From positions 865,194 to 929,193 of the forward strand of contig JAWQFM010000008.1 in NCBI GenBank assembly GCA_033442325.1: a DNA stretch of 64,000 nt, written 5' to 3'. This document shows, one piece after another, positions 12,258 to 25,923 of this stretch (positions are counted from its first letter, which is position 1; each line of letters begins with the position of its first letter). The stretch comes from Salpingoeca rosetta (Eukaryota; Protista; Choanoflagellata). The notes under the pieces were generated by a model. That model saw nothing but the letters and a program-made list of their open reading frames with translations. It ran no database searches and was not told the origin of the DNA. Made by a program: the position numbers and the translations under genes.

Positions 12258-19498
<7,241 letters not shown>

Positions 19499-19828
19499 CG
19501 TGCTTCCCCTCCACAACAACGGCTATGACCGACCTCCCAGTCGAAGACAGCTACTGGCTACCTTGTTAGCGAGCTAACAACACCGTGCTTCTTGCCAGGA
19601 GCAGTCGGACGGAGCAGAGCAGTCGGACGGAGCAGAGCAGGCAGGTTGAGTGTGCTGGTCGTAGTGGTTGGTTTGGTTTGTCGCGGCAAAATTGCTGTTG
19701 CCAGGAGATGATTTTGTGCTGTCGCATTCCACCACTTCTTTCGTCGCGCTTTTCTCCTCCTCCTGCGTGCTGCTCGCTCCACTGTGTGTCTGCTATCTGT
19801 CTGTCCACCACCCACCCACCCGACAACG

Positions 19829-21061
19829 ATGGAGATGAACGAGGAAGCGGGCGTGGTGATGCAGCGCCTGATAGAGTCGCATGGCTCTGTGGAGAAGCTT
19901 CCCTCGACGATCCTCGGGTTGACACCGATGCTGGCCCACGGCATGGATTGGCGCGATTTCATTGGCCAGGTCACCGCCGCTGGCTTAGCACAGCAGGACG
20001 GCCGTCAGCTCCACTGGAACGCCACCGCCGTCAACCAGTGGTATGATGCCCGTCTCGTCGACTCGGATTATGAAGACGACTTTGAAGAAGAAGAAGAACA
20101 AGACAGTGAAGAAGACCAAGAGGAAGAGGAGGCGGCGGCGGTGCTGGACGGCCAGGGTCAGGGGCAGCAGCAGCAGCACCAGGGACAGCAAGCCCAAGCA
20201 CAGCAAGAAACAGTCCCCGCGCCGCTGCCGCCATCGACAACATCCGGCACCAACGGCGGCGGTGCAAGCCATGTCCAGAAGCTGTTCAACTTCTCGGATA
20301 CGGCCAGCACGCAGATCGGGCCAGGCGAAGAGACCAGCCCTCGCACGGCCCCTCTCAACGCGGCGGCAGTCCAAGCAACATCGTCGTCGTCGACCAACCC
20401 ATACGGCCCGCCTCCAGGCACCGTTCCTGCGGACAGTCGCCCTTCGCGGCCCTTTCCGTTTCAGACGACACCACCTCCCACCCCGCAGTACGTTACTGGC
20501 CCGCCCACTCCAAACAGCCTGCGCGCCATGAAGTCTGGCGCCGTGGCCCCGCCTGCGCGGCCCCCATCCCACGACGCACCGAGGACGCAAGCGCAACAAC
20601 AGCTACAGCAGCAGCAGCAGCAGCAAGCTTCCGCAGTTTTGCCAACTGCAGACGATGAGGAAGTGGTTGCTGCAATCAAGCAACATCTTGTGGAAGTTGG
20701 AGGCGAGGCCGTCGCCTGTTCCCTGCCCATCCATCTGCACCACGTTGTGCCACACGCGAGTGACACGATCAAGCGCCACGGCAGGTTCCGCAACTTTGTC
20801 GATGCATTCCACCACAAGGGCATCGCGTTTGTCGAAAACTCGAGTGGTGGGAACGTGCGGCTGACACATGGCCTCGCTCACCGGTCGCTGTCCCAGAAGA
20901 GGACGAAAGCCGGCCAGCCGCCTGCAGCCGAACAAGGCCAGCAGCAGAGTTTTCAACAACAAGTTCAAGAGCAATTCAAGCAAGGACAACAACAACAGCA
21001 ACAACAGCCGCCTCCTCAGCAGCCACCACGGCAGGAGCAGGCAACACAGCCAAAGCCACAG

Positions 21062-21099
<38 letters not shown>

Positions 21100-22080
21100 A
21101 CAACAGCACCAGCAACAACAGCACCAGCAACAACAACACCAGCTACAACAGCACCAGCAACAACAGCACCAGCAGCAGGTAGCGATGGACCCGCGTCTGG
21201 CACAGCGCGTGCCTCCGAGCGGTGCGCCTTCTGTGGAAGAGGTTGCTCGCGCCATCAGGAAGTACCTGCAGGCTGCTGGCGGTGCGGCCTGTGCCAGCGC
21301 CGTTCCCCTCCATCTGCAGCACGAGATGCCATCGGCGATTGACACCATCGGCGCCTTTGGGCGCTTCCGCGCGTTTGTTGACATGTGCGACAGTAAGGGC
21401 CTGGGATTTGAGTTCATCCACGACAACATGAATGGTCGCGTGCAGCTCACCAGCCGTTCCAACGCAACAGCACCAGCAGCACCACCAAAACCAACACCAG
21501 CACCGAAACCAAAACCAGCACCAACAGCAGCCCCAACTGCACCCACAGCAACAGCGCCACCGCGGCGCCACTCCATCAACACCCCGTCAACGAGTGATGT
21601 TGCTCGCGTCATCAGGCACTACCTGCGGGACAAAGGCGGCTCTGTCATTGCCAGCTCCATCCCAATCTATCTGAGGGACGCGATGCCTGACGCTGACACA
21701 ACCATGAAGAAATACGGCAGGTTTCGCAGCTTCGTTGAGGAGTGTGCTCAGAGAGACCTGGGGTTTAAGTATGTCCCCGACAACGCGAGTGGCCTTGTCT
21801 GCCTGACCGAGCGTGAGCATGATTCGCGTTCGCAGCCCCACTCCAGCATCACCCCCCCGTCAGCGAGTGAAGTTGCTCGCGTCATCCGCCGTTTCCTGCA
21901 CGGCCAACATGGCTCCATCATTGCCAGCTCCATCCCACCGTACCTCAAGCACGCAATGCCTGGGGCTGAGGCAACCATCAAGAAATACGGCAAGTTCCGC
22001 AGCTTCGTTGAAGAGTGTGCGAAAAGAAGGTTGGGGTTTGAGTACGTCCCCGACAACGCGAGTGGGTTTGTGCGCCTGAC

Positions 22081-22115
<35 letters not shown>

Positions 22116-23221
22116 GTGGCAACGCGAGCGTGCGTACTGCCAACACTGCAGCCATTCCTGCATCAGCAACGGCGGTGCACCATCCGTTGGCTGCACGTGC
22201 CCCGACGACTGCTGCTAACACAACCAGCAGCAACGCAGCGCAGCCAGCAGGCGTGGCGCCCGCTCCACCGGCTCCTCCTGCTGCCCTGCAGGCGTCGTCA
22301 GCCCACGCACATGTCCAACACCACCAGCACCAGCAGCAGCAGCAAGAACAGCAGCAAGAACAGCAGCAGCAGCAGCACGAACAGCAGCAGCAGCAAGAGC
22401 AGCAGCAACCTTCTTCTTCTTCGGCCCCATCAACCGCGGGTGCCACGAGTGCGACTGCTACTGCTCCCACTGAGGCCAGTGCAACGAGCCAGGGCGCGCG
22501 CTTTGATGTTGATGCTGCTGCGTTTGCCGATCACGTGGCAACGCGCTTGCCACTCTCGACGCGGCTCGTAGAGTACGTGAACCGCCACGCTTCCGAGGTG
22601 GCAGGCGTCGACCTGCATGTTGACGGCCGGGCCATTGTCTGGCAGCGCGGCCCGCATGACGAGAAGCCGCGGCCCGAGGTTTTTGTGGACGCCCACACGT
22701 GCCACGAGGTCGTCGAGTGGCCCGAGACGAACCACCTCGGCTGCCTCGCCATCGACAACGCGTTGCACAAGGTGTGCGTGCTGCGTGACAGCATGGACCA
22801 CCTGTCGTGCGTCACCATTCGCCTCGTGCACCCGATGCTGCCACTGCCGCACTTCCCCTTCCTTGCCAAGAAGGCGGCCACTGGTGGCTTCTTTGCCTTC
22901 CGCGGCACCGACCGCGCCGTGTGCAATGCCTTCCTTCGCACCGCCGCCAAGCACCTGTGCATGTCCAACCACGTCGTTGTGCTTGATCCGTACGGCGAGA
23001 TTGCCGGCCAGGGCCAGCGCTGCGAGGCCCTCATTGGCGGCGCTGTGCGCATGCCGCTGTTCCCCGATGACGACAGTGCGCGCGCTGTGGAGCGAGCCAC
23101 CGTCGTGCTGGACGCAGACATTGTCATCTTGTGTATCACGCCAGCGCACAAGCACGCCCACTTGGCAAACATTGCCGAGCAGCTCCCTGTCTCCCTCATC
23201 ACCGCCATGATCACAAAGTGA
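19829..23221 (+). CDS. Intronless 1130-aa Q/P-rich protein with four LOTUS/OST-HTH-like repeats and a C-terminal degenerate Ycf45/SpoIIIAA-like P-loop domain
   Basis: Single long ORF. Four repeats of about 72 aa (V.R.IR.YL...GG....S.IP.YL....P.A..T.KKYG.FR.FV.......GF..V.DN..G.V.LT) at about 20651-20866, 21224-21451, 21580-21808 and 21853-22081. The C-terminal domain (about 22500-23218) contains IDNALHKVCVLRD, VVVLDPYGEIAGQG and IGGAVRMP. Confidence 0.85.
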
Positions 23222-23574
23222 TGGGTGTATGTGTGTGTGTGCGTGTGTGTGTATGTGTGTGCGCGCGCGCTTGTTTGTGAGAGAGTGAGCGTGTGCGCGT
23301 GTATGTCGTGTGTGTGAGTGTTTGCGCGCGTGTATGTGTGAGTCAGTGCGTGAGTGTGAGCGCGTGTTTGTGTACAGTTTCATTGTTGAACGACTGATGT
23401 ATGTGTTGAGTATGATGCGTTCATCACATCATGTCACCCCTCGCTCTTTGCCCCCTTGCTTGCGATTGTGCGTCTGCGTTGCCAATTGGCTGGTTGGGTT
23501 CATTTGAAGATGAACAGAGTACCCCGTTGTCACAATCTGCATCGAGAAGCGAAGCTGCCTTTGCACACACATAT

Positions 23575-23661
<87 letters not shown>

Positions 23662-23667
23662 CAGCTG

Positions 23668-25923
23668 CTACGCTGTTTGCGGTGAGGTGTGGCTGGTGCC
23701 GTTGTCTTCCTGCTCGTCAAAGAGTTTGGCGATGAATGTGTTGCTGAGGACACCACGTGGGTCGAGCCGTCGCCTGAAGTGATTGAACCGGTCAACGGGG
23801 AAGCGCTCTCGCATGCGTGCTCTCAACTCACGCAGCTCAGCGGGATCTGTTGGGACTTCAAGCTTGGCCCAGTGTACATACGCGTCATACTTGGCATCAA
23901 GGTTGTCGGCGACCAATTGCCTGTACTTGAAGAACGCTTGCGTAATGGCCTCGCGCTCGCGCGTGTCTGCCGTACACAAGTACATGATGATGCCCGCCCA
24001 TGCGTGGATGCCGTCCTCGTGTGCCGGTACGCGGCCTGGCCCAGGGCCACCGACACTCATGGCGGAGGTGGAGGTGCGCGTCCACCGCTGCTCGATAGGC
24101 GCCGGTGCAGGCACGTGGTTGTCCTCAATCAGGGCGAGCAGGTCTGCCATGAACGCCATATCGGCCATGTCGGGCGCTTGCAACGTGCCTGCAGGGAAGC
24201 ACACCTCGTTCACCCACTGCTGCCCTCCGCACTCAAATCCAAGCACCTGTGAGTGTGCACAATGTGAGTGAGTGCGCTCAATGTGGGTGAGTGCGCTCAA
24301 TGTGAGTGAGTGAGTGTGCGCAATGTGTGCGAGGGTGTGTGCGCAATGTGTGCGAGGGTGTGGTACGCTCACCTCGTCGCTGTAGCCGACGCTGGTGATG
24401 CCCTGGTTTCGGCGCCAGAACTCGGCTTCGGCAGCGTTGCACTTCTTCACGTGCTCAACATCTGCACGTGGCAGAGGTGTTGGATGGGTGTGTGTGTGTG
24501 TGTGAGGTTAGCAGGCATGCAAACGGAAGACCACACATACACACAGAGGCAGACAGACACAGACACAGAAGCAGACAGAGAGACAGAGAGACAGAGAGAC
24601 AGAGAGACAGAGGCAGACACACACACACAGACACACAGACACACACGCACGCACACACACAAACACACAAACACACACAGACACACAGACACACAGACAC
24701 ACACGCACGCACACACACACACAGACACACACACGCACGCACACACGCACACACGCACGCACACACACACACACACAGACACACAGACACACACACACAC
24801 ACACACACACAGACACAGACACACAGTCGGTACCTCGAGGGTTGGCGGCCAGGATGGCGTCGCGAAGGTCCGCAAAGTGCATCGTGCGCATGCGGTCTTG
24901 GGAGATGCTCGGGTTGACCTGTTGCAGCAGCGATCGCAGTGGCGCCAGCGCATATGCCTCGTGCTCGCTCGCCTGCTTCTCCTCGGCCTCTGCTTCGTCC
25001 TGTGCCCGCGCGGCATGTGTGGTGTTGTTGCACTCCACAACAACCACGGCGTCCTCGTACGGGATCCACATGTATCGGACGTGCTTGTTGCGCCGCAGCC
25101 GCTCCTTGTGGCCGCGGCGGGCCTCCTCGCGCGTGATGACGCTAGTTCGCTCCGTCAGGAGGTGGTGATCAACGCACTGCAGCGTGACGGTGCCCATGAT
25201 GCCCAGCGCACCGAGTCCAACGCGTGCGAGGTCAAACAGCTCCGGGTGTGACTCGCGTGTGACGCTCAAGGTGCCCTGGGCGGGCGTGATGAGGCTGAAG
25301 CCAACAACCTGGTCGTCCGCGGGCGGGATGGCTGCGCCGGTGCCGTGCGCGCCGGCTTGCACGAAGCCGCCAATCTGCTGCTCTCGGATGGACGCGTAGT
25401 TCTGCAGCGTGAGCCCATATGGCCGGAGCTTCTCCACGACGTCTGCCACGCGTGCGCCGGCCTCCACGCACACCTGCTTCGAGTCCGGGTCCACCCACAG
25501 CACGCGGTTGCAGTTGACCATGCTCAGCATGCCCTCGTCACTGAATGCCAGGCCGTTTGGCGAGATGGCCGAGCCCACAACGCGCAGCCGCTGGCCCGTC
25601 GCGTGTGCTCTCGCAAGCGCGTCCTCCACCTCACCCAGGCTGTTCGGCTCCACGAACACGCGAGGCCACGCCGTGTGCGTCCCAGACCAGTTGACCACCT
25701 CGTGACTGTCGTGGTCATGATTGCCGTCGTCATCATCCCTGCCTGCTTCTGCGTGCGCCAGGCGACATCCACGCATCCAGCCGTGTGTGATGGTGGTGGT
25801 GCCACCTCTTCCCTCTTCCCCTTTGCTGGCTGGTTCCCATGCGCTCCATGGGTGCAGCAGCGCTGCTCCCGATGCTGCTCCCGCCACAGCTGCCCACCGC
25901 ATGAACACCCTCCCCACCACCAT
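23668..25923 (-). CDS. GLDH: L-galactono-1,4-lactone dehydrogenase (FAD-linked aldonolactone oxidoreductase); exons 25923-24834, 24461-24373, 24246-23668
   Basis: [83 protein letters not shown] and LDPRGVLSN are typical plant/algal GLDH motifs. Splice phases are consistent. Confidence 0.93.

Follow-up and report, generated by a model that had tools for sequence, protein, structure and literature searches.

Four LOTUS-like repeats and a degenerate Ycf45/SpoIIIAA-like domain in a candidate RNP scaffold of Salpingoeca rosetta

LOTUS (OST-HTH) proteins are familiar chiefly for organising the germ granules of animals. The domain itself predates animals, and what it does in general is debated, with both RNA binding and helicase regulation being proposed. 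In MARF1 (Limkain-b1), a closely packed tandem array of minimal LOTUS domains is combined with an NYN nuclease and RRM domains. TDRD5, TDRD7, Tejas and Tapas carry Tudor domains together with an N-terminal extended LOTUS domain that binds Vasa, and the insect-specific protein Oskar joins a single dimerising extended LOTUS domain to the inactive, SGNH-hydrolase-like OSK domain. LOTUS-plus-IDR proteins scaffold germ granules (PMC8331183); among them, MIP-1 and MIP-2 of C. elegans bind the Vasa homologue GLH-1 and act as condensate scaffolds (PMC8331183). Outside this group, bacterial Ycf45-like proteins consist of a SpoIIIAA-like NTPase followed by PF25516 and R3H domains.

The gene described here lies within a 64,000-nucleotide stretch of Salpingoeca rosetta DNA (the window; Table 1) and encodes a combination of domains that appears to be undescribed: the word "ATPase" does not occur in the original survey of OST-HTH architectures (PMC2848206), and a full-text literature search for the LOTUS domain together with choanoflagellates returned nothing relevant. 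The protein differs from MARF1 in that a Pfam search finds neither NYN nor RRM, in that its repeats are spaced by disordered linkers of 18–170 residues, and in having a pseudo-NTPase at the C-terminus; no sequence homology with MARF1 is detectable. Compared with the TDRD5/TDRD7/Tejas/Tapas group it is without Tudor domains and without an evident alpha-5 extension. Its likeness to Oskar is one of analogy and not of homology, since the dead enzyme belongs here to a P-loop NTPase family as opposed to the SGNH hydrolases. The divergent LOTUS domains set within long intrinsically disordered regions resemble those of MIP-1 and MIP-2, although the C. elegans proteins have two such domains and no enzyme-derived domain. 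Finally, the C-terminal domain aligns in one register with the N-domain and P-loop core of the Ycf45-like NTPases and is joined, as in their R3H and RRM fusions, to predicted nucleic-acid-binding domains, whereas Walker A lacks GK[ST], Walker B lacks the catalytic glutamate, PF25516 and R3H are absent, and the Pfam and TIGRFAM models fail.

The coding sequence occupies one open frame on the forward strand (19784..23221) with its first ATG at position 19829. Three stranded RNA-seq runs read the region from about 19.6 to 23.55 kb continuously on one strand, with depth unbroken from bin 19536–19719 to bin 23400–23583 (X21–X23), and the only joints inside the transcript are CAA/CAG-repeat artefacts without GT..AG ends. 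The single-exon frame of 1130 residues, proposed in an earlier note made from the sequence alone, is therefore borne out by the ORF listing and by reads that contain no intron-like joint, and the gene is transcribed.

Table 1. Features of the gene and its product, with positions counted from the first nucleotide of the window.
Feature	Position	Strand	Evidence
Unspliced transcript, approximate ends	19600..23560	+	Stranded RNA-seq depth, no GT..AG joints inside
Coding sequence, single exon, 1130 aa + stop	19829..23221	+	ORF listing, RNA-seq
N-terminal region, aa 1–79	19829..20065	+	ESM Atlas best score 0.78, no family
Acidic tract, 48% E, 20% D	20066..20140	+	Composition
Disordered linker 1, Q/P/A/T-rich	20141..20653	+	Composition
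LOTUS-like repeat R1, aa 276–346	20654..20866	+	
PolyQ linker 2, 49% Q, 16-Q run	20867..21229	+	Composition
LOTUS-like repeat R2, aa 468–541	21230..21451	+	Repeat alignment; own-genome profile match 136.9 bits
Linker 3, P/A/T-rich; 30% P, 24% A	21452..21589	+	Composition
LOTUS-like repeat R3, aa 588–660	21590..21808	+	ESM Atlas neighbours; part of 273-nt tandem duplication
LOTUS-like repeat R4, aa 679–751	21863..22081	+	69% identical to R3; TRF
Disordered linker 4, A/Q/S/T-rich, poly-S, Q/E runs	22082..22489	+	Composition
Degenerate, truncated Ycf45/SpoIIIAA-like P-loop NTPase, aa 888–1130 (243 aa)	22490..23218	+	Sequence and language-model comparison
Walker A-equivalent site, GTDRAVCN	22904..22927	+	BLAST and hhalign registers agree

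Four repeats of about 72 residues, as the note had also claimed, are recovered in an alignment of 76 columns in which 20 columns are invariant and pairwise identity ranges from 36 to 69%. The last two are visible at the DNA level as a tandem repeat of 273 nt with 80% matches (TRF). When the 72-residue unit was modelled with AF2, a winged helix was obtained at a pLDDT of 93.2, with an alpha1-beta1-alpha2-alpha3-beta2-beta3 core for which LOTUS domains are the closest relatives among solved structures. A fold search of the ESM Atlas with this model gave an NYN+OST-HTH cluster as its top match (TM 0.78, rmsd 1.5 Å), and OST-HTH is present in 86 of the 100 ESM Atlas clusters nearest to R3 in language-model space (best score 0.92). 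The sequence signal is far fainter. PF12872 has no match at E <= 10 in the whole protein or in any single repeat, nor any in a six-frame search of the genome, and the repeat profile has none among PDB sequences. Aligned by hhalign to 31 bacterial OST-HTH domains, the four-repeat profile gives a weak match (score 20.3, P = 0.0019, probability 14%) which nevertheless runs end to end over 65 columns (6–74 to 20–88) and outscores each of 200 column shuffles (maximum 19.6, mean 10.2). A conserved motif of OST-HTH domains, G-h-x-p-h, lies in the insert that precedes their third helix (PMC2848206). At the corresponding loop–helix junction G-[RK]-F-R-x-F-V is retained in every one of the four repeats; their glycine comes two positions later than the family Y-G in the profile alignment, where the hydrophobic register agrees.

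Winged helices are among the very common folds. One alternative is that the protein is a DNA-binding transcription regulator, with its tandem winged helices on DNA and its glutamine-rich and acidic tracts serving as activation domains. Tracts of both kinds are classic activation-domain compositions and are present here alongside the winged helices. When Foldseek matches are ordered by E-value, DNA-binding winged helices (AspA, F93, Zur and FOXO) head the list, none of them significantly. In the fold searches LOTUS ranks above every DNA-binding winged helix; its Z margin over other winged helices is about 1 unit. We regard the transcription-regulator reading as improbable. Taken together, the fold searches, the language-model neighbours and the weak but full-length profile match support the view that the repeats are divergent LOTUS-type winged helices.

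Minimal LOTUS domains bind G4 or G-rich RNA, from bacteria to animals (PMC7498356), while binding to DEAD-box helicases needs the C-terminal alpha-5 extension of the extended form (PMC5458760), which is confined to animals (PMC7498356). R2, R3 and R4 resemble the minimal form because each passes directly into P/S-rich low-complexity sequence, and RNA binding is therefore a better analogy for them than helicase recruitment; by this analogy, the repeats more likely bind RNA than recruit a DEAD-box helicase. The competing account would have at least one repeat act as an extended LOTUS domain, binding the C-terminal RecA domain of a Vasa-type DEAD-box helicase and concentrating it in granules as Oskar, Tejas and MIP-1 do. 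Extended LOTUS domains do account for three of the top structural matches (TDRD7 L1, Tejas and TDRD5 L1), the roughly 15 proline-free residues that follow R1 could make a short helix, and recruitment of Vasa homologues is documented for LOTUS-plus-IDR proteins (PMC8331183, PMC5458760). Such a role is nonetheless distinctly unlikely given the requirement for alpha-5, the tracts that follow R2–R4, the restriction of extended LOTUS to animals, and a modelled 72-residue unit that stops at the beta-hairpin.

A fifth, N-terminal winged helix had also been suggested but is not supported. Neither the ESM Atlas (Table 1) nor hhalign gave a significant match for the first 79 residues, either as a winged helix or as a degenerate repeat. 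The hhalign score against the repeat profile (13.6) lies between the mean (9.4) and the maximum (17.1) of the shuffles, and the part that aligns, in register, is confined to helix 1 and the GG turn.

For the C-terminal domain, the language-model neighbours in the ESM Atlas are Chloroflexota clusters annotated AAA/NTPase_1/Spore_III_AA (score 0.92), and the sole credible match among 1.84 billion proteins is a Euglena RRM-NTPase, P0002 (phmmer, E = 6.6e-4). This protein combines an RRM with a Spore_III_AA domain and scores 134.5 bits against a bacterial Ycf45-like HMM, to which our domain gives 8.8 bits, ranking first of 2001 against shuffles (hmmsearch). Aligned by hhalign to 22 bacterial Ycf45-like proteins, the domain scores 36.9 (P = 2.7e-4, probability 42%), about 7 SD above the shuffles (mean 15.8, SD 2.9, maximum 24.9). 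The relationship is remote, at 23–26% identity. Of the family blocks outside the catalytic motifs, several survive (LH+V..LR, T.R, LR..A, V.LD..GEI.G.G, IG.A.RM and AVE). The catalytic motifs are lost: where the family has GrPGvGKT (GxPGxGKT) and P0002 has GEPRSGKS, the Walker A equivalent reads GTDRAVCN, while the Walker B equivalent is, depending on the alignment, VVLDAD or VILCIT, neither of which contains the D-E pair. The domain stops near position 318 of the 604 in the family, just after the T-x-A-H block. The sporulation protein SpoIIIAA proper was considered as a relative and set aside, its hhalign match being short and out of register.

Could this likeness have arisen by chance or composition, the domain being some other or novel alpha/beta fold unrelated to Ycf45/SpoIIIAA? 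Neither PF19568 nor TIGR02858 matches the protein at E <= 10, and a genome search with PF19568 is empty at E <= 1; neither the domain nor P0002 matches any PDB sequence. An AF2 model built on a two-sequence alignment with P0002 was unusable (pLDDT 34.8). The bit score against the bacterial HMM and the hhalign probability are both low, SpoIIIAA proper offers no in-register match, and all of the catalytic motifs are missing, as they would be from any unrelated sequence. What makes a chance resemblance unlikely is that four partly independent lines, namely the language-model neighbours, the phmmer match, the hmmsearch rank and the hhalign score, give one family and one register, with the retained blocks in agreement. 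These comparisons of sequence and language-model embedding support a remote, Walker-A-less relative of the Ycf45/SpoIIIAA-like NTPases which is, judged from its motifs, catalytically dead and C-terminally truncated. The dead Ycf45/SpoIIIAA ATPase of the earlier note therefore stands, on the strength of the P0002 match, the hhalign score and the loss of Walker A.

No relatives of the whole protein were identified. Pfam and NCBIfam gave nothing at E <= 10 for the protein or any of its domains, and in the 55.4-Mb assembly (68 contigs) neither the repeats nor the C-terminal domain had a detectable paralogue, the searches returning only the gene itself. Residues 888–1130 and 588–751 found no protein homologues in a set that apparently lacks the proteins of this genome and of its near relatives, and P0002 as a query in a homologue search retrieved only itself. 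Searches of metagenome contigs, for which the repeat profile and C-terminal domain served as queries, and of genome contigs, for which P0002 served, gave pattern matches but no relative. The top match in a representative search, P0001, is a repetitive low-complexity protein aligned over eight short stretches and was dismissed as spurious. No orthologue was found, and these searches therefore give no link by descent to the animal germ-plasm proteins.

With neither orthologue nor paralogue detectable, a high content of low-complexity sequence, a recent internal duplication and degenerate domains, the gene might be taken for a young, fast-evolving orphan that is transcribed but effectively neutral and has no specific molecular function. 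We consider this highly improbable. The missing orthologues are weak evidence because proteins of this genome and of near relatives seem to be absent from the databases searched; moreover, a 3.4-kb frame has been kept open at 58–64% GC, the 20 positions are invariant in all four repeats and their core folds confidently, dN/dS among the repeats is 0.34–0.55 (0.47 for R3 against R4), and expression is steady across all three RNA-seq runs.

We conclude that this is an expressed, lineage-restricted gene whose product combines four divergent minimal-type LOTUS domains, long Q/P/S/A-rich disordered linkers and a dead, truncated relative of the Ycf45-like NTPases, which together probably make up an RNP scaffold or adaptor. 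By analogy, the protein is most likely a multivalent RNA-binding scaffold: the four LOTUS domains would bind RNA multivalently, with targets that may be G-rich or structured as for the minimal LOTUS domains that have been tested, the glutamine-rich linkers would add weak self-association, and the pseudo-NTPase would serve as a protein-interaction or oligomerisation module as opposed to an enzyme. The logic of such an assembly would be comparable to that of MARF1, TDRD5/7 and MIP-1/2. A role specifically as an RNA-granule scaffold is one that we infer. A bolder proposal, which we think unlikely as it stands, is that evolution outside animals arrived independently at a solution like that of Oskar, with the LOTUS array, prion-like linkers and dead oligomerisation domain nucleating a specific RNP condensate. 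If true, this would place a condensate, which could be a stage-specific granule (sexual or starvation-related, for example), in a unicellular relative of animals, and the Ycf45-like pseudo-NTPase would give the valency that is supplied by Tudor or OSK domains in animal germ plasm.

The protein adds a new partner to the LOTUS repertoire, in that four very divergent LOTUS domains are joined through prion-like linkers to a dead Ycf45-like NTPase, and it illustrates how whole LOTUS arrays escape curated HMMs yet come out easily by structure prediction. Being compact and intron-free, it offers a candidate with which to test whether RNPs in protists are scaffolded multivalently by LOTUS-plus-IDR proteins. 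Since Ycf45-like modules recur beside R3H (in bacteria), RRM (in P0002) and now LOTUS, their domain partners point to an RNA-linked role, a first hint as to what this module does.

The opposite strand is transcribed on both sides of the gene, giving convergent and divergent neighbours. Of the intron-dense surroundings described in the earlier note, the two flanking genes were checked, and both are spliced: RNA-seq reads show a 253-nt intron (CT..AC ends) in the minus-strand gene upstream, and the downstream neighbour, an ALO/FAD-oxidase gene, comprises at least two ORFs with a splice-like loose end at 24248.

The gene occupies the only long open frame in an ORF listing of its region (19784..23221, plus strand); the first ATG lies at 19829 and the stop codon at 23219–23221, giving a protein of 1130 residues. 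Expression was followed in three stranded RNA-seq runs (2026, same organism label) over window positions 18800–24300, using one quarter of the reads of each run. Within that quarter, depth was unbroken on one library strand from bin 19536–19719 to bin 23400–23583 (approximately 5–50x), and by library convention the transcript is from the plus strand. The joints found inside the gene connect CAA/CAG-repeat tracts only, have no GT..AG ends and carry foreign letters. These joints are cross-mapping from other polyQ loci, and the coding sequence is therefore unspliced. The gene is thus both expressed and intron-free, confirming the single-exon frame seen in the earlier note.

The protein consists of four foldable LOTUS-type domains (the repeats R1–R4, listed in the table), long disordered spacers rich in Q, P, S and A, and a C-terminal domain (residues 888–1130) devoid of an NTP-binding P-loop. 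Aligned over 76 columns, the repeats share 20 invariant positions and show pairwise identities of 36–69%, in agreement with the four repeats and biased low-complexity spacers first noticed in the sequence. The inter-repeat segments are extreme in composition, including an acidic tract (48% E), a linker in which Q makes up 49% and includes a run of 16, another that is 30% P and 24% A, and finally poly-S plus Q/E-rich sequence. Together with their 18-residue linker, R3 and R4 also form a tandem repeat at the DNA level (21574–22081; period 273 nt, 1.9 copies, 80% matches), which means that the array grew recently by unequal crossing-over. The dN/dS ratio among the repeats is 0.34–0.55 (0.47 for R3–R4, with dS 0.42). 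Within the organism's own genome, neither the repeat nor the C-terminal domain turned up outside this gene.

Repeats of the protein and simple-sequence tracts flanking the gene
Feature	Position	Location
R1	residues 276-346	
R2	residues 468-541	
R3	residues 588-660	
R4	residues 679-751	
Imperfect (CA)n microsatellite	18902-19034	upstream of gene
GT-rich dinucleotide tract	23225-23373	begins four bases past stop codon
Perfect (AC)41 microsatellite	23577-23659	between convergent 3' ends

Searches of Pfam and NCBIfam with the whole protein and with each single repeat gave no LOTUS (OST-HTH, PF12872) or other match at E <= 10, and a repeat profile found none among PDB sequences. Structure-based and feature-based evidence consistently points to the LOTUS fold. 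AlphaFold2, supplied with R1 and the four repeats as alignment, returned a model (pLDDT 93.2, pTM 0.81) in the order helix, strand, helix, short helix, helix, beta-hairpin. The best match in an ESM Atlas fold search was a bacterial NYN+OST-HTH cluster (TM 0.78, rmsd 1.5 Å, 67 residues), with an OST-HTH cluster in the first row (TM 0.73), and 86 of the 100 clusters nearest to R3 in language-model features were OST-HTH (best score 0.92, 192 of 256 features shared). In the Foldseek check suggested in the earlier note, the top TM-score (0.71/0.69) belonged to the Tejas LOTUS domain, but every E-value was non-significant and generic winged helices were listed first. When the four-repeat profile was aligned by hhalign to 31 bacterial OST-HTH domains fetched with PF12872, the match ran end to end over 65 columns with a score of 20.3 (P 0.0019, probability only 14%), which none of 200 column-shuffled controls reached (maximum 19.6, mean 10.2, SD 2.3). 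LOTUS leads the other winged helices by about 1 Z unit, so the assignment is strong though short of absolute. A DNA-binding regulator, which the generic winged helices might suggest, is very unlikely. We read R1–R4 as highly probable LOTUS domains divergent enough to evade Pfam. The fifth, N-terminal winged helix once envisaged gained no significant support, since the N-terminus aligned with the repeat profile at residues 4–21 only, where it keeps the register of helix 1 and the GG turn, the score (13.6) fell inside the shuffle range (maximum 17.1), and the best ESM Atlas score for the first 79 residues, 0.78, came with no family.

LOTUS domains fall into an extended subclass, with a C-terminal alpha-5 helix required to bind and stimulate Vasa, and a minimal subclass without it, as in MARF1 (Jeske et al., PMC5458760). 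Ding et al. (PMC7498356) report binding to G-rich or G4 RNA for both kinds, in domains of bacterial, plant and animal origin, and the extended form as restricted to animals. In R2, R3 and R4 the hairpin leads directly into P/S-rich low-complexity sequence; R1 alone is followed by about 15 residues without proline. On present evidence the repeats would be minimal LOTUS domains, making RNA binding the better-founded analogy and DEAD-box recruitment the minority reading. That the protein is a helicase recruiter, with the stretch behind R1 as the nearest candidate for an alpha-5 helix, is accordingly quite unlikely.

The C-terminal domain had no match in Pfam, NCBIfam or PDB sequences. Its language-model neighbours are clusters from bacteria, chiefly Chloroflexota, that carry the annotations AAA, NTPase_1, AAA_5 or Spore_III_AA (best score 0.92, 190 of 256 features shared), and the best family-bearing matches had a common family or clan in 10 of 10 cases. 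A phmmer search of 1.84 billion representatives gave two matches. One, P0001, is repetitive and of low complexity, its match being broken into eight short pieces, and was discarded; the other, P0002, matched once, over query residues 84–224 (E 6.6e-4), and is a Euglena gracilis transcript product (EukProt) in which an RRM accompanies a Spore_III_AA-like region. Bacterial members fetched with PF19568 form two groups, SpoIIIAA proper (sporulation, ~340 aa) and Ycf45-like proteins (500–640 aa), the latter combining a SpoIIIAA-like NTPase, PF25516 'PTPase' and R3H, which was present in two of the three checked (L131, L135, L148). Against an HMM of the Ycf45-like group P0002 scored 134.5 bits and the C-terminal domain only 8.8 bits, the latter ranking first among 2000 shuffles (shuffle best 4.9). 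By hhalign the domain matched the Ycf45-like family over 117 columns (score 36.9, P 2.7e-4; 80 shuffled queries, mean 15.8, SD 2.9, maximum 24.9) in the same register as BLAST to P0002, and had no in-register match to SpoIIIAA proper.

The motifs kept are non-catalytic: LP and (D)xGR of the N-domain, L-H-[KR]-[VI], T-x-R, L-R-x-x-A, V-x-[LV]-D-x-x-x-E-I-x-G-x-G, I-G-x-A-x-R-M, A-V-E and T-x-A-H. At the Walker A position GTDRAVCN stands against the family's G-r-P-G-v-G-K-T, and at Walker B the corresponding segment reads VVLDAD in one alignment and VILCIT in another. The protein stops near family position 318 of 604, so the rest of the ATPase core, PF25516 and R3H are all absent. An AlphaFold2 model of the domain with P0002 as sole aligned sequence failed (pLDDT 34.8). 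That this part of the protein, and this part only, is unrelated to Ycf45/SpoIIIAA could draw on the low bit score and is unlikely given the shared register. We consider the domain probably homologous to Ycf45-like NTPases, in which case loss of NTPase activity would be near certain; the dead Ycf45/SpoIIIAA domain of the earlier note thus survives as a remote Ycf45-like match with its Walker A lost. P0002 itself has D-Q instead of D-E at Walker B.

Beyond P0002, no relatives were found in two word-indexed protein searches, the whole-library search, two metagenome scans and one genome-collection scan. The same databases, searched without finding orthologues, did not return the protein itself and may leave out records of this genome or of near relatives, so this absence is weak evidence; a functionless orphan, which it might suggest, is highly improbable for this expressed gene. 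YCF45 homologues of cyanobacterial ancestry occur in plastid-lacking Phytophthora and Naegleria, Monosiga not being listed (Maruyama et al., PMC3087521). OST-HTH proteins are recorded in choanoflagellates, with fusions described to domains for RNA binding, anchoring and the ubiquitin system; that survey nowhere uses the word ATPase (Anantharaman et al., PMC2848206). A full-text literature search for LOTUS domain with choanoflagellate gave a single paper, on an unrelated matter. The combination of LOTUS domains, disordered linkers and pseudo-NTPase, assembled from parts of known kinds, appears undescribed, as had been supposed.

By analogy, each LOTUS domain would make one weak RNA contact and four on flexible tethers would provide avidity, as proposed for the tandem LOTUS array of MARF1 (PMC7498356). 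The Q-rich linkers may favour self-association, and the pseudo-NTPase may be retained as an interaction or oligomerisation surface, parallel to Oskar's dead OSK domain and to the Tudor domains found in TDRD proteins. The Ycf45-like module recurs in fusion with nucleic-acid-binding domains (R3H; RRM in P0002; now LOTUS), a pattern that suggests action on or close to RNA by the module itself. A role as RNA-binding scaffold or adaptor is, taken singly, a tentative proposal falling a little short of even chances; the full description, a LOTUS array with disordered spacers and a pseudo-NTPase as a putative RNA scaffold, with its conditional steps flagged as such, is moderately favoured.

Both flanks of the gene are read from the opposite strand, placing it between a divergent upstream and a convergent downstream neighbour. 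An RNA-seq joint in the upstream minus-strand neighbour (18819>19073, CT..AC ends) marks a 253-nt GT..AG intron (18820–19072); the large ORFs examined on that side (15587–17176, 17289–18347 and 17807–18709) had no Pfam match. The downstream neighbour (minus strand, 23668–24450 and 24508–25923) carries FAD_binding_4 and ALO domains (gulono-/arabinono-1,4-lactone oxidase-like) and is divided among at least two ORFs or exons, with a splice-like loose end of RNA reads at 24248, which partly bears out the intron-dense surroundings. An out-of-frame ATG at 19708, which may lie in the 5' UTR depending on the exact transcription start, opens a 113-codon ORF (19708–20046) overlapping the main start codon. 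An A>G difference at 21001, within a CAA/CAG repeat, is carried by roughly 40% of the RNA reads in each of the three runs and also shows up, at low frequency, in a contig run; reads cross-mapped from other polyQ loci are its probable source, rather than editing or an allele. Further differences, at 20164, 22028 and 22651, each appear in a single run only.
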